Shown here: piece by piece, positions 3,523 through 60,949 of the stretch | Layout of the letters: each line of letters opens with the position of its first letter | Numbering within the stretch: the stretch's first letter is position 1 | From: Paraphysomonas bandaiensis | Lineage: Eukaryota > Protista > Chrysophyceae | DNA: 64,000 bases | Direction of reading: 5' to 3' | NCBI GenBank assembly: GCA_965644295.1 | Contig: CBFFRP010000285.1 | Coordinates: forward strand, 96,130-160,129 | Program-made: the position numbers and the translations under genes | Notes under the pieces: model-generated | What the model was told of the DNA's origin: nothing | Database searches by the model: none | The model's input: the letters and a program-made list of their open reading frames with translations, nothing else

Positions 3523-4005
3523 TAGTAGTGAATGTCTTATTATTAGCAATAGGCGTTAAGAGTCAGTGCTTAACTCTGATAGCCTACTATGTAACGCTAC
3601 GAAAGCTGCTTGTGCTTCACCGTAAGCACCAAAGTGCGACCACTTTCGCTCTATTACTCAAAGCAAACGCAGTGAGAAAGCAGAATGTTGATATACCTGG
3701 CATCTGCTGACTTTAGGATTTTTGAGTCCTTAAGGTGAACAGCCCGGATGCTTGACATCAGCAGGCAGCCCAATACCCCAGACGCCCTTGAGGTGGTCAC
3801 ATTCCCATTGCCTGTTTATTCGTTAGGGCCCAAAGACGTCTACAAAAGTGACATATCTTAATAGTGTTCCTTATATCACACAAGCATTAGGCTATGTGTG
3901 GACAGAAAATTATCTGCTGACTATACATGTAGAAAATATCTCCGGTATTTATTATTTATCCCCCAGAACACCACGAAAAGGTGTAAGTCCGACTTTGTTA
4001 TGGGC
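3523..4005 (-). mobile_element. Non-autonomous retroelement (SINE/SIDE-like), copy 1
   Basis: Homologous to 45561-46077 and 60611-60949; its 3' end matches the LINE 3' UTR (..CGCCTATTGCTAATAATAAGACATTCACTACTA); 5' end has HDV-like core ACC-TTTTCGT-GGT. Confidence 0.8.
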
Positions 4006-18899: not shown

Positions 18900-19078
18900 A
18901 CTACGATCTACATTATCATGGTCGACCACAGTCATTGAGTATACGAGTATGCAACATGCAACAGTACGTCAGCACATTAAAAGTTATTCTTGTGACTTGT
19001 GAATATGAATAATCCTTAGAATTATGATGTAGCCGACAAAATATAATTTTAGTCGTAAATTTCAAGCCTGTGTATTTC
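18900..19078 (+). repeat. Left copy of 179-bp direct repeat flanking the LINE (putative TSD)
   Basis: Identical by eye to 22193-22371. Confidence 0.92.
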
Positions 19079-22000
19079 AACGATGTAGTTGACTGGTTTG
19101 GCAACTTAGATGCCGGCGGTCTAACATTTCCCTGGACACCATTCATGGCAAACAACATAGAGCCACGTTCTCTCCTTGACCTCCTGTCCGCAGACGGCCA
19201 CTTCATTGCACTATTCAGTCTGGGTTTCGAAGCCGAAAGGGGTATCACCCAAGGGGGCACAGAATCCACATGCGCCTGGGTGGCACTCTACGACATCCTT
19301 CTCACGTGGCTGGACATTGAACTGTCAACAACGAGTCCAACGTTACCAACTATTCAACTCACGACTCCGACTACCGGCGAAATAAAGATCTCCTTCGCGG
19401 ATGATCTTAACACAATAGCTAAATCCATACACGCTGCCCAACTCATTGCCCAACAAATATCTGCGTTCTGCGTACTTTCGGGAATGGAGCTCTCTATCCC
19501 CAAAGTAGTTTGCACAGTGTTTCCGATCCTACAAGATTCCAACAAGTCCTCCGACCCCATTGGCTACATCATTCTCTACGACTGGTCGTGGCGTCCACAC
19601 CCAGTCCCTATCCAAACATCACTAGAGTCGATACATTACCTCGGAGCAGACCTTCCTCTCACAATCACAGACAAGGCCTCCCATGATTGGTGTCTAAAAT
19701 ACCTGAAAGTCGTGACCACACACCTAGGGATTAAACAGGCCTCAGCCGGCTGTAAAGTCATGGTTATCGAGACCCAAATCATACCGACTTTGCTCTATAG
19801 AGCCACCAAAGCTTCATGGCCGCTACACTGGTACAGAGAAATTGACGCTGCTTGCGCAACCCTCTACAGAAAGGCCCTCAGTCTAGGCCCTGGATACCCC
19901 ACGGAACTGATCTACCTCTCACTCAAGCACAACGGATTAGGTATGAAACGTTTCTCAGACTCGGCGCAGGAGCAAAAATGGGGATCTCTACAGCGCGCAA
20001 TAACCCTCGGGGGAGAAGCAGGTCAAGCAGCACATTTTCTACTCACTCAGACAACAGAGCCACAGCCCCAATACCACCACTATGTTCTCAGCCTCAGGGA
20101 ATGGGGAACGGAATTGGGCCTTACCCTTCAGGAACCTGAGCCCCCCGAACCACAGGATGAACACATGCTGACCAACCTAAAACAAGAACTCGGCCTTAAT
20201 AGTGTCCAACCAGATACTTTCAAGGCTATCTTCACAGATGGATCATACACAGCCAGTGCGCTCTCCACTCGTCGCCTCACTCATGTCAATCCGCGAACCC
20301 GATGGACACACCGAGGAGGTGCAGCGGTCGTCTACTTACCCCCAGAAAATGCCTGGGAAGATGGTACAACCACAATACTACGACTAGATACACCCTTTCG
20401 TGACGTGCCCGGTTTGGACTCATACGCATACGAACTCATAGGCACAGCCATGGGGCTTATACTCTCAACACGTATTCCCGAACACATACGAAGCCACACA
20501 GACTGTCAGGCAGTGTGCACCCGCACTGAGGAAGCACTCTCCACAAGACGCAGAGCTCTCGGTCACCGTGCAAAAGGGGTACTACTCGAAAGCATCGCAG
20601 CCAGCAGAGATTGCAAACGACAGGTGACCTGGGTGAGGTCCCATCCCGAACGACGTACCACAGATGAAACGGAGTGGACGTTTGAGGACAAGGGCATCTA
20701 TATTGCGGACGCAGTTGCGGGTGAAGACTGGCATGAAGTCGATCGCATCCTTGGAAAAAATAACTACACTGTCTGCACAATTGCGATTGACAGTGCCATC
20801 GAACGCTTACTAACTGCTGGATTATGGCACTGGCGTATGCACAGTACAAGACGGCCATACTACTCTAGCCCACTCCTTACTAATTTCCAGGATCTCTGCG
20901 ACCTAAGGACACTTGAGAACTACACTTCAACCAGAGATCAACGCTACGGACACAATCCTGATCGAGCGCCTGGCTACTGGACCAATAGCGGAGTACACCT
21001 CCCGCGCAAACTAGCTCAAGCGGATGGCAGTGCATCCAAAGACAAACTCAGCTCAAATCTACGCCAAAGAATACTCAACACGGCACTGACATGGGACAAA
21101 TCTTTCTGCATAGGGAGGAACCGGGCCAAAACCAAACAGGGACTTGACCTGACCAAAGCCGCATGCTCTGACTGCGGGTTTCGACTAGATTCCCTAAAAC
21201 ATATGTGCCTCGACTGCACACATGAATCCATCACCCAAATAAGGGAAACTGCATTTCAATCGCATAAAAATGTGCTCCACGAAATACAGAGAACTCAGAC
21301 CTTACCCAACTGGATCACATCTGCACTACGGAGACTCTCCAGCAGAGCCTGGAATCCCTCCATCCCACAGGTCGAGAGATACTGGACTGGAACCATCACA
21401 GCAGCCCAACTGGAAACGGTCTTCGAAGATGCCATACACAACCACCTGACGGCACACAGTCTACGGAACCTAGAAACAGCGGTTATTAATCTCCTGCAAC
21501 CGCTTTACACTGCAGCGAAGCTTATGCTACAGGATCGCGGTTGTCGCTATATCACCATGTCCAAAAGGCCGCCCAGACTACTCCCGAGACCCCGTCCGAA
21601 ACGCAGTCAGTCAAGACAACGTCCGAGAGTCCTTCGACTACTAGGGGTCCAACGAAGACCCCCCACAGCGTCCCCGACTCCAGACACACGTGCACACCTC
21701 ACAGGTCCTACCCGACAGAGCACTGGACTGCCCAGACCTCCACAACGCCGACGGCTTCGACAACTCTATCTACACCCGCGGCCCCACAGGAGCACAGTAA
21801 CACAGACTACAAACCCAACTCCTCCTCCCAACAATCCCCACCACTCTCAACCCACACATCTGGAACTAGGTGCACTCAGGACCCTAATCCAGAACGCTGA
21901 GCCCCCTCCAACACCAATGGAGACCCATCCCAAAGGGAGACCCCCAGATCAATAGCGCCGGTGAGTCCACGGACACACGATAAAGGCGAATTTCATATCA

Positions 22001-22197
22001 CACAAAAGAACGGAAGTGGTTGCACCTTGGTGCTTGCGGCGACGCACAAGCAGCTTTCGTAGCGTTAAATAGTAGGATAAAAGAGTTTGTATTGATTAGT
22101 TACGGGTAGTGGTCTAACTAGTATGACTAGCATTCTTCTAGCCACTAATTGATGCAAGGTCTCAACGCCTATTGCTAAATAATCAGACATTCACTAC
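19079..22197 (+). mobile_element. 5'-truncated non-LTR retrotransposon (RT - RNase H - CCHC finger), clade unresolved
   Basis: Uninterrupted ORF to 21955: RGITQG, ISFADD, HYLG, RNase H (FTDGS, YELIG, HTDC, WVRSH, ADAVA), CxxC..HxxxxC; ~240-nt 3' UTR ending GACATTCACTAC. Confidence 0.92.
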
Positions 22198-45403: not shown

Positions 45404-45560
45404 TGTTTGACAGTGACTAAAATGTGACGAAATAGTAGCAAGATAGTATTTTTTGTTGTGTGACCATGCGATATTTGGTATTAATTGACTATCACACATA
45501 CGAGGTCTTCTTTCACACGCCAGTACAAAAGAAGTAGAATATCAAAACACAGCCCGGAGA

Positions 45561-46077
45561 TATTGAAAGTCTTATTATTAGCAATAGGCGTTAAATACCT
45601 GCACCAACTTAGTAGCTAGATGAATGCTAGACAAACTAGTTAGACCTCTACCTGGAACTAATCAGTACACACATTTTTATCCTACTATTTAACGCTACGG
45701 AAGCTGCTTGTGCGTCGCCGCAAGCACCAAGGTGCGACCACTTCCGCTCTGAGTTCTTAAGGTGAACATCCCGGCTGCTTGACTTCAGCAGGCAGCCCAA
45801 TACCCCGGTTACCCTTCAGGTGGGTCCTGACCCTTATTCCCTTGAGGTGAGCCCATTCTTGGATGCCTGTTTATTTGTCAGGGCCCAAAGACCAAATACG
45901 TCTACACAAGTGACACTAATTGGTGTCCCTTGTACCACACAAGCATTCGGCTATGCGTGGGCAGAAGAATATCTGCTGACTATGTTTGCGGCTCACGGTA
46001 GTTTCCCAGAGAGAATCTCTCCGGTACTTATCCCCCAAAGCAGCACGAAAAGGTGCGAGTCCGACTTTGTTATGGGC
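45561..46077 (-). mobile_element. Non-autonomous retroelement (SINE/SIDE-like), copy 2, most complete
   Basis: 45561-45750 is the reverse complement of LINE 3' end 22007-22197 at high identity; 5' part shared with copies 1 and 3. Confidence 0.85.
45990..46076 (-). ncRNA. Candidate HDV-like self-cleaving ribozyme at the 5' end of the element (decayed copy)
   Basis: Manual fold of the three-copy consensus gives P1, P2, P3/L3, GG, P4 and J4/2 in HDV order; not tested computationally. Confidence 0.55.
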
Positions 46078-60610: not shown

Positions 60611-60949
60611 TAGTAGTGAATGTCTTCTTATTAGCAATAGGCGTTTAAGAGTCAATTATATTTAACTCTGATATCCTACTATTTAATATTTAACACTACT
60701 AAAGCTGCTTGTGCGTCACCACAAGCACATCACTCAAAGCAAACGCAGTGACAAAGCAGAAGGCATAAACATATACCTGACATCCTGTTTATTCGTCAAT
60801 ACCTAAAGACATCTACTCAAGCGACACTTATTAGTGTCCCTTGTTCCACACAACAATATCTGCTGACTATATATGTGGCTCACGTTAGTTTTTCCGGTAC
60901 TTATCCCCCAGAACGCTACGAAAAGGTGAAAGCCTGGCTTTGTTGAGAG
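60611..60949 (-). mobile_element. Non-autonomous retroelement (SINE/SIDE-like), copy 3, internally deleted
   Basis: Homologous to copies 1 and 2; ends GACATTCACTACTA; retains ACTAAC-GTGAGCC (J4/2-P2'). Confidence 0.8.

Follow-up and report, generated by a model that had tools for sequence, protein, structure and literature searches.

A candidate HDV-like ribozyme of the L1Tc/Pr77 type at the head of a LINE-dependent SINE family

Does an abundant non-coding retroelement of a marine eukaryote begin with a self-cleaving ribozyme, and is it cleavage or transcription initiation that sets its 5' end? The question is raised by a short repeat found three times on the minus strand of the 64,000-nt stretch of DNA analysed here (the window). 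A sequence-only reading had proposed that these copies start with an HDV-like ribozyme; the three copies and the strings quoted for them are all present in the window and can be aligned. The reading that we consider most likely, and to which we give about an even chance, is that the head of the element (~87 nt) would be an HDV-like ribozyme module of the L1Tc/Pr77 type, in which the P1 helix is shifted in register. The window copies are as follows.

45560-46076, minus strand: SINE copy 2, a complete A-type element of 517 nt, 92% identical to young copies, with its 3' end ...GACTTTCAATAT at 45560
45990-46076, minus strand: head of copy 2, consensus nt 1-87 (window coordinate = 46077 - n), candidate HDV-like fold
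3580-4004, minus strand: SINE copy 1, old and degraded, head starting at 4004 (CCCATAAC), J4/2 and P2' deleted
60684-60949, minus strand: SINE copy 3, old and degraded, head starting at 60949 (CTCTCAAC), P4 deleted, further internal deletions

As had been noticed from the sequence, every copy carries lesions. Copy 1 is without J4/2 and P2' and copy 3 without P4, while copy 2 has A4 in P1, C34 breaking P3' (GCT), an altered P1' and C79 in J4/2 (ACTACC). Consequently, none of the three is a candidate for activity, and the case for a ribozyme rests on the young consensus elsewhere in the genome.

The SINE family and its 5' end

The candidate ribozyme takes up nt 1 to ~87 of a short retroelement that is abundant, with at least 584 copies. 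Searching the 62.5-Mb assembly with a 291-nt query gave 2179 first-look candidates, and the exact 19-mer 5' end CCCTCAACAAAGTCGGACT occurs 584 times genome-wide. Thirty young copies are near-identical across their first ~320 nt and then diverge into an A form (~513 nt) and a B form (~1209 nt), in which the longest ORF spans 48-55 aa. Both forms terminate in ...TTTCAATA(T), without a poly(A) tail, and the A form closes with ~190 nt that come from the 3' UTR of a LINE, of which a 5'-truncated copy lies at 19070-22196 of the window:

19070-21955, plus strand: open frame of the 5'-truncated LINE, comprising the C-terminal part of the RT and the downstream region
22007-22196, plus strand: LINE 3' UTR, source of the A-type SINE tail (87.5% identity over 190 nt)

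Since the 3' tail is LINE-derived and poly(A) is lacking, the family is a LINE-dependent, SINE-like retroelement, a conclusion to which its target site duplications (TSDs), its high copy number and its lack of coding capacity contribute. The proposed link between a non-autonomous element and an RNase H LINE is thus borne out: the element is TSD-flanked and its tail is the 3' UTR of such a LINE.

Further information about the 5' end was obtained from 39 SINE copies for which perfect TSDs of 8-16 bp were identified. The TSD directly adjoins C1 of CCCTCAAC in 35 of them, and one extra base lies between the two in three more; the remaining copy (L003), in an AT-rich repetitive flank, has an ambiguous 3-base offset. 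An extra G is found at the 5' junction in only 2 of the 39 copies. Therefore, the SINE template RNA starts at C1 with high precision. C1 is window position 46076 in copy 2. That homology breaks off at the predicted start of the element is confirmed, with a correction of position, as C1 lies one base inside the start given previously (46077); it is also one base upstream of the P1 strand proposed in that reading. Apparent 5' duplications at two loci (L027, ~1770, and L029, ~1772, both minus strand) were discarded, being merely SINE copies nested in the head of another copy. These two insertions are independent, each with its own TSD, and their insertion point is nearly identical (head nt ~41-44), which may reflect target preference or coincidence.

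The 5' ends of full-length LINE copies, suggested earlier as a place to look for the same ribozyme, do not carry it. Over 20 complete copies of the partner LINE, 99-100% identical, share one start, ATTCTCTGCCCTACG... / ATTCTCTGCC..., which is unrelated to the SINE head. The head is therefore not simply inherited from the partner LINE. One such 5' end, ATTCTCTGCCCTACGATGGC..., is found at ~3706 of the reverse complement of L091 (G000:C440:11000-16999, minus strand), only ~60 nt before an open frame of ~3021 aa. Besides the partner, no fewer than three LINE families are present in the genome, at about 71%, 48% and 45% protein identity, and the short stretches around the predicted ORF starts of the 71% and 45% families contain no head. 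No other element with the head signature was found in the genome, and apparent long matches that might have represented a longer head-carrying element turned out to be clusters of nested SINEs.

Subfamilies differ little in the head, of which nt 1-59 and 70-90 are invariant between them. The only master-level changes concern the P4 apex, CCGGAGAG-AUU-CUCUCUGG versus CCGGAGA-UAUU-UCUCCGG, a replacement that keeps the hairpin while changing G.U to G-C and altering the loop. Over nt 91-321, by comparison, there are ~10 substitution sites and one repeat-unit indel. This pattern agrees weakly with a ribozyme whose core is conserved and whose P4 is free to vary. Regarding the covariation that had been proposed as a check on P1, P2 and P4, a structure-keeping change between subfamilies is present in P4 and none is seen in P1 or P2. 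Copies without J4/2 and P2' (7 copies) or without P4 (13 copies) were considered as a proxy for mutagenesis; neither is a proliferating subfamily, so that the comparison is uninformative, and the rarity of such variants is silent on whether these parts are required.

The body downstream of the head contains, at consensus nt ~205-320 (window ~45757-45872 in copy 2), 3-4 tandem units of ~27 nt (CATCCGGGA..GGGCCCACCT.AAGGG), each with a GGGCCC palindrome inside; one unit (nt 226-251) differs among SINE copies in its presence or absence.

Pairing potential of the head and the register of P1

On its sequence, the head fits the HDV-like helix order P1-P2-P3-L3-P3'-P1'-P1.1-P4-J4/2-P2', a predicted nested double pseudoknot. 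The order of P2, P3, L3, P4 and J4/2 described from the window copies is also that of the family consensus. The elements map onto copy 2 as follows.

46070-46076, minus strand: P1 5' strand, nt 1-7, consensus CCCUCAA (CCCAUAA in copy 2)
46055-46062, minus strand: P2 5' strand, nt 15-22 (GGACUCGC, A17 bulged), paired in 94% of cells across 72 copies
46042-46054, minus strand: P3 (ACC)-L3 (UUUUCGU)-P3' (GGU), nt 23-35; P3' is GCU in copy 2 and broken
46039-46041, minus strand: linker G36U37U38, 3 nt from P3' to P1' in the favoured register
46032-46038, minus strand: P1 3' strand, nt 39-45, consensus CUGGGGG
46025-46031, minus strand: J1/4, nt 46-52 (AUAAGUA), with the AGUA(C) motif common to trypanosomatid ribozymes
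46006-46024, minus strand: P4 hairpin, nt 53-71, its stem kept where subfamilies differ
45997-46005, minus strand: J4/2, nt 72-80 (GAAACUAAC; ...ACUACC in copy 2)
45990-45996, minus strand: P2 3' strand, nt 81-87 (GUGAGCC)

In the proposed fold, P1 would pair C1-A6(A7) with (C39)U40-G45, P2 nt 15-22 with 81-87, and P3 nt 23-25 with 33-35, closing L3. P1.1 would consist of the single pair U28-A46, which A46 of J1/4 is able to form with U28 of L3, and P4 of an 8-bp stem (nt 53-60 with 64-71). Over 72 copies, 94-97% of the cells of P2, P3, P1.1 and P4 are paired. J4/2 and L3 are invariant in the family consensus; L3 begins with U and has G as its penultimate base, as the HDV-like fold requires, and C76 of J4/2 (window 46001) is the candidate catalytic cytosine. 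CPEB3 and the genomic HDV ribozyme have the same helix order, a 3-bp P3, an L3 of 7-8 nt starting with U and with G second to last, and a J4/2 in which the C is followed by purines. They differ from the SINE head in that their P1 is contiguous with P3', and no sequence similarity to it is found outside L3.

The P1 helix needed revision. The strand CCATAAC taken from the window is atypical, because CCCATAAC is found at a 5' end, genome-wide, only in the window copies starting at 4004 and 46076 (minus strand), as opposed to 584 heads with exact CCCTCAAC. These two copies lie 42 kb apart and belong to different subfamily types, yet have this unique start in common; its restriction to them suggests local copying or gene conversion between copies 1 and 2. 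In the contiguous register assumed at first, which pairs nt 1-8 with 36-43, the consensus has two mismatches (U4.U40 and C5.C39) rather than the single one reported; both are central and fixed, and the helix amounts to -4.4 kcal/mol. A shifted register, C1-G45, C2-G44, C3-G43, U4.G42, C5-G41 and A6-U40, provides six standard pairs and -8.7 kcal/mol, with A7.C39 mismatched. For comparison, P1 of two ribozymes proven active reaches -9.7 (LmSIDER2A) and -7.3 kcal/mol (TvSIDER1). Both the MFE fold and an independently built covariance model select the shifted P1, and its first paired base coincides with the TSD-defined C1.

The price of the shifted P1 is the 3-nt linker G36U37U38, which separates P3' from P1', plus the A7.C39 mismatch. 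In canonical HDV-like ribozymes P1 continues directly from P3' without a linker, and we know of no HDV-like ribozyme with 3 nt at this point. Genome-wide pattern counts gave zero copies with the compensated 5' strand CCCAGAAC or 3' strand GTTGAGGG, and single P1 changes occur at background level only. One head (L005:1496-1583; G000:C363:318817) combines C5A, C39T and G41A into a perfect 7-bp P1 (CCCUAAA/UUUAGGG) and has the top covariance-model score, 12.6 bits; no second copy in the genome combines these three changes, so that it is a one-off.

Likeness to trypanosomatid ribozymes

The L1Tc features that the earlier reading had named (ACC-7nt-GGT, C at +1 and CTAA) agree with the 77-nt Pr77 sequence, printed as oligo R77 (PMC1874656), and further trypanosomatid ribozyme sequences are given in the supplement of PMC4035085. 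We aligned the head with L1Tc, NARTco, TvSIDER1 and LmSIDER2A using MAFFT, unguided. The blocks CCCT, CACCT, CGTGGT, GGG, AGTAC and GGAAnCTAA are common to all five, and the head agrees at 28 of the 40 columns that are invariant in the four ribozymes. None of 300 dinucleotide shuffles reached this number (17.4 +/- 3.0, maximum 27). The G36U37U38 linker has no counterpart in the four ribozymes; the 3-nt insertion that MAFFT assigns to the P1' strand lies within the column ambiguity of the linker. In the shifted register, the GGG-NNN-AGUA spacing before P4 is identical to that of all four, and the distance that separates P4 from the candidate catalytic C is the same as in LmSIDER2A. At equivalent structural positions, P1.1 reads U-A in the SINE head and A-U in the trypanosomatid set.

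The resemblance to these validated ribozymes concerns spacing as well as motifs. Like L1TcRz/Pr77 of the trypanosomatid L1Tc/ingi clade (L1Tc, NARTc, L1Tco, SIDER1/2), the SINE head sits at nt 1 of a non-LTR or derived element, and its opening CCCU pairs with a GGG run. Common to the two are also P3 ACC/GGU, a 7-nt L3 ending in CGU and a single-pair P1.1, GGG-NNN-AGUA(C) before P4, GGAA(G/A)C(U/C)AA as J4/2, and CGTG ~25-33 nt from +1. The SINE head differs in the 3-nt insertion between P3' and P1', the A.C atop P1, a longer J1/2 and a U-rich L3; moreover, it is absent from the partner LINE and belongs to a different eukaryotic lineage.

Statistical support for homology of the head to L1TcRz/Pr77 is weak. 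A global pairwise alignment with Pr77 gives 54 identical positions of 77 (z=3.0), and 10 of 2000 shuffles were as good. Trained on nothing but the four trypanosomatid sequences, a covariance model (P1+P3) aligns full length to SINE heads, with model position 1 on C1. Of its 45 matches with E<10 in 0.36 Mb, 43 are SINE heads, scoring from 7.9 bits (consensus, E about 8) to 12.6 bits, with E values of 0.5-8 in 0.72 Mb. Taken at a single pre-defined site, such a match has a probability of ~1e-5; taken as a database search, it lacks significance. A sequence-only nhmmer profile of the trypanosomatid ribozymes retrieved no SINE head at E<100. Scanning the whole genome with the covariance model for other carriers gave three chance-like matches unrelated to Pr77, a pattern with canonical Pr77 spacing matched only SINE copies with 1-nt deletions, and a metagenome scan with the core pattern gave one chance bacterial-like match.

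Known families were also searched. Rfam found no ribozyme family in the whole window at the gathering threshold and, at E<=10, neither HDV, CPEB3, drz nor any other family in the window copy or a young copy. The requirements used by Webb et al. in HDV-like screening are too restrictive for ribozymes of the L1Tc type (PMC4035085), and the Rfam negatives therefore count for little. A lenient HDV descriptor, written to accept the SINE head, has 16 matches in 681 kb of non-SINE sequence (~2e-5 per nt), and a stricter version (P2>=7, P4>=6) has 3. Since the descriptor is so rare in the background, it is unlikely that an HDV-like arrangement at the pre-defined base is accidental, even allowing for post-hoc tuning. 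The descriptor also matches the antisense SINE strand near nt ~230 in some copies (L002, L008, L013 and L029), with a perfect 7-bp P1 and weak P2 (5 bp) and P4 (4 bp); these matches are probably a by-product of the GGGCCC repeats.

Ribozyme, promoter or other 5' module

If the head is a ribozyme, a SINE copy would be transcribed by read-through or from its own internal promoter and its RNA would cleave itself immediately 5' of C1. The cleaved RNA, with its LINE-derived tail, would then be reverse-transcribed by the LINE machinery, giving new copies that start at C1. Cleavage, and not the start of transcription, would thereby set the 5' end. R2/RTE ribozymes and R2-derived SIDEs act likewise, a 5'-terminal ribozyme freeing the element RNA from a co-transcript and setting the 5' junction. 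Non-autonomous derivatives of R2/RTE-type ribozyme elements are known (PMC3414825, PMC3774820). There, however, the non-autonomous elements have the ribozyme in common with their autonomous parent, which is not the case of this SINE. Besides, R2/RTE ribozymes start with G and have the GC pairs of P1 in the opposite orientation (PMC4035085), and no Rfam HDV-type model matches the head.

The main rival holds that the head works solely or chiefly as an internal Pol II promoter, comparable to Pr77 or to those of Drosophila LINEs, the HDV-like fold being a non-catalytic relic or a coincidence. The exact 5' end would then result from focused initiation at C1, directed by downstream elements such as CGTG. 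We regard this as somewhat unlikely. For Pr77 of L1Tc, internal Pol II promoter activity has been demonstrated by experiment, with a downstream promoter element (DPE), CGTG, at +25..+28 (PMC4748587), and the CGTG of the SINE, at +30..+33 within the P3-L3-P3' segment, sits in the same CGTGGT block. Thus CGTG could be the Pr77 DPE, so that part of the likeness could reflect a promoter function at the DNA level. For the same reason the description of the element as promoter-independent, given from the sequence alone, is not supported: its closest known relative, Pr77, is both promoter and ribozyme. Moreover, several trypanosomatid Pr77 copies keep the hallmark without ribozyme activity (PMC4035085), and the invariance of nt 1-59 includes J1/2, whose conservation an HDV ribozyme would not need.

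The available RNA contigs are neutral on self-cleavage or speak slightly against it, and can be read in favour of a promoter. A contig from a polyA metatranscriptome runs, without differences, from 82 nt upstream of one SINE copy (L019) to head nt 58. It represents either an uncut junction or carried-over DNA, and the copy concerned has G81A. If uncut, it would fit, together with the non-canonical P1, an inactive ribozyme. The RNA runs are stored as contigs, in which RNA ends are not readable, and the downstream flank of the copy is covered by no run, a probable DNA run included.

On the other hand, P2, P4 and P1.1 differ in sequence from those of the trypanosomatid ribozymes and still pair, which points to a constraint at the RNA level. 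The invariant nt 70-90 (J4/2 and P2') lie far downstream of a core promoter. The rarity of an extra 5' G, as cap addition can leave, is a further point against initiation at C1, and C is an unusual start base for Pol II. Initiation, cleavage or both could produce the exact 5' end. An HDV-like ribozyme of the L1Tc type, possibly also acting as a promoter, is a plausible description of the head.

Alternatively, the head could be a structured element that serves some other purpose at the 5' end (RNA stability, protein binding or template recognition), its likeness to HDV-like ribozymes being due to chance and post-hoc fitting. It would agree with this that the formal database searches are all negative or marginal, that shuffled sequences can equal the Pr77 alignment, that the MFE stability of nt 1-97 is ordinary (z=-0.3), and that a register shift and a linker had to be allowed. 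Against it, the head agrees with the trypanosomatid ribozymes at several independent structural positions, and the agreement coincides with nt 1 of the element; chance is also at odds with the one-site probability of the covariance model, the failure of all 300 shuffles to reach the observed share of invariant columns, and the low descriptor background. We consider this alternative quite unlikely.

Most SINEs are of the Pol III type, with a head derived from a small RNA, and the head here is unrelated to the 5' end of the partner LINE, as such an origin would have it; a classical Pol III SINE, headed by a tRNA, 5S, 7SL or other small RNA gene with A and B boxes, is nevertheless very improbable and largely refuted, since ARAGORN finds no tRNA-like structure in the head, Rfam finds no small-RNA family at E<=10, B-type copies measure ~1.2 kb, and the head has a conserved TTTT at +26..+29 and the tail a T5 run, which would act as Pol III terminators in most eukaryotes.

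The ribozyme reading therefore remains the preferred one for the head. The L1Tc/Pr77-type class is already known, and the SINE head is a further candidate member. We found no paper linking HDV-like ribozymes to diatoms or stramenopiles, within an incomplete coverage of the literature. It is tempting to propose, tentatively and at somewhat less than even chance, that trypanosomatids are not the only carriers of an active HDV-like ribozyme of the L1Tc/Pr77 type, which may double as a promoter; here it would head a marine eukaryote's SINE with hundreds to thousands of copies, with a variant linker and without being part of the LINE that mobilises the element. If so, the ribozyme/promoter module would be ancient and widespread, or would have spread horizontally, and hundreds of potential self-cleavage sites would be scattered in host transcripts. 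Copies in sense orientation could cut these transcripts and affect mRNA stability, as proposed for Leishmania SIDER2. Activity would also widen the range of the L1Tc/Pr77 module to the high-copy SINE of an unrelated marine protist and provide a case of a SINE with a ribozyme head that its LINE partner lacks. In addition, a naturally occurring variant would be at hand to probe how far the HDV fold depends on a P1 directly adjoining P3.

Two minor observations may be added. Old SINE copies (among them L031, L034, L035, L038, L039, L049, L052 and L054) show many deletions with varied end points, which cluster on P4, J4/2 and P2' (head nt 55-90) in a sampling biased by the query; they could be due to the reverse transcriptase skipping over a structured region, or to ordinary decay. 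Finally, marine polyA metatranscriptome runs contain the unique upstream flank of the L019 copy (1300-2200) without differences, so that these samples contain the source organism or a strain very close to it.
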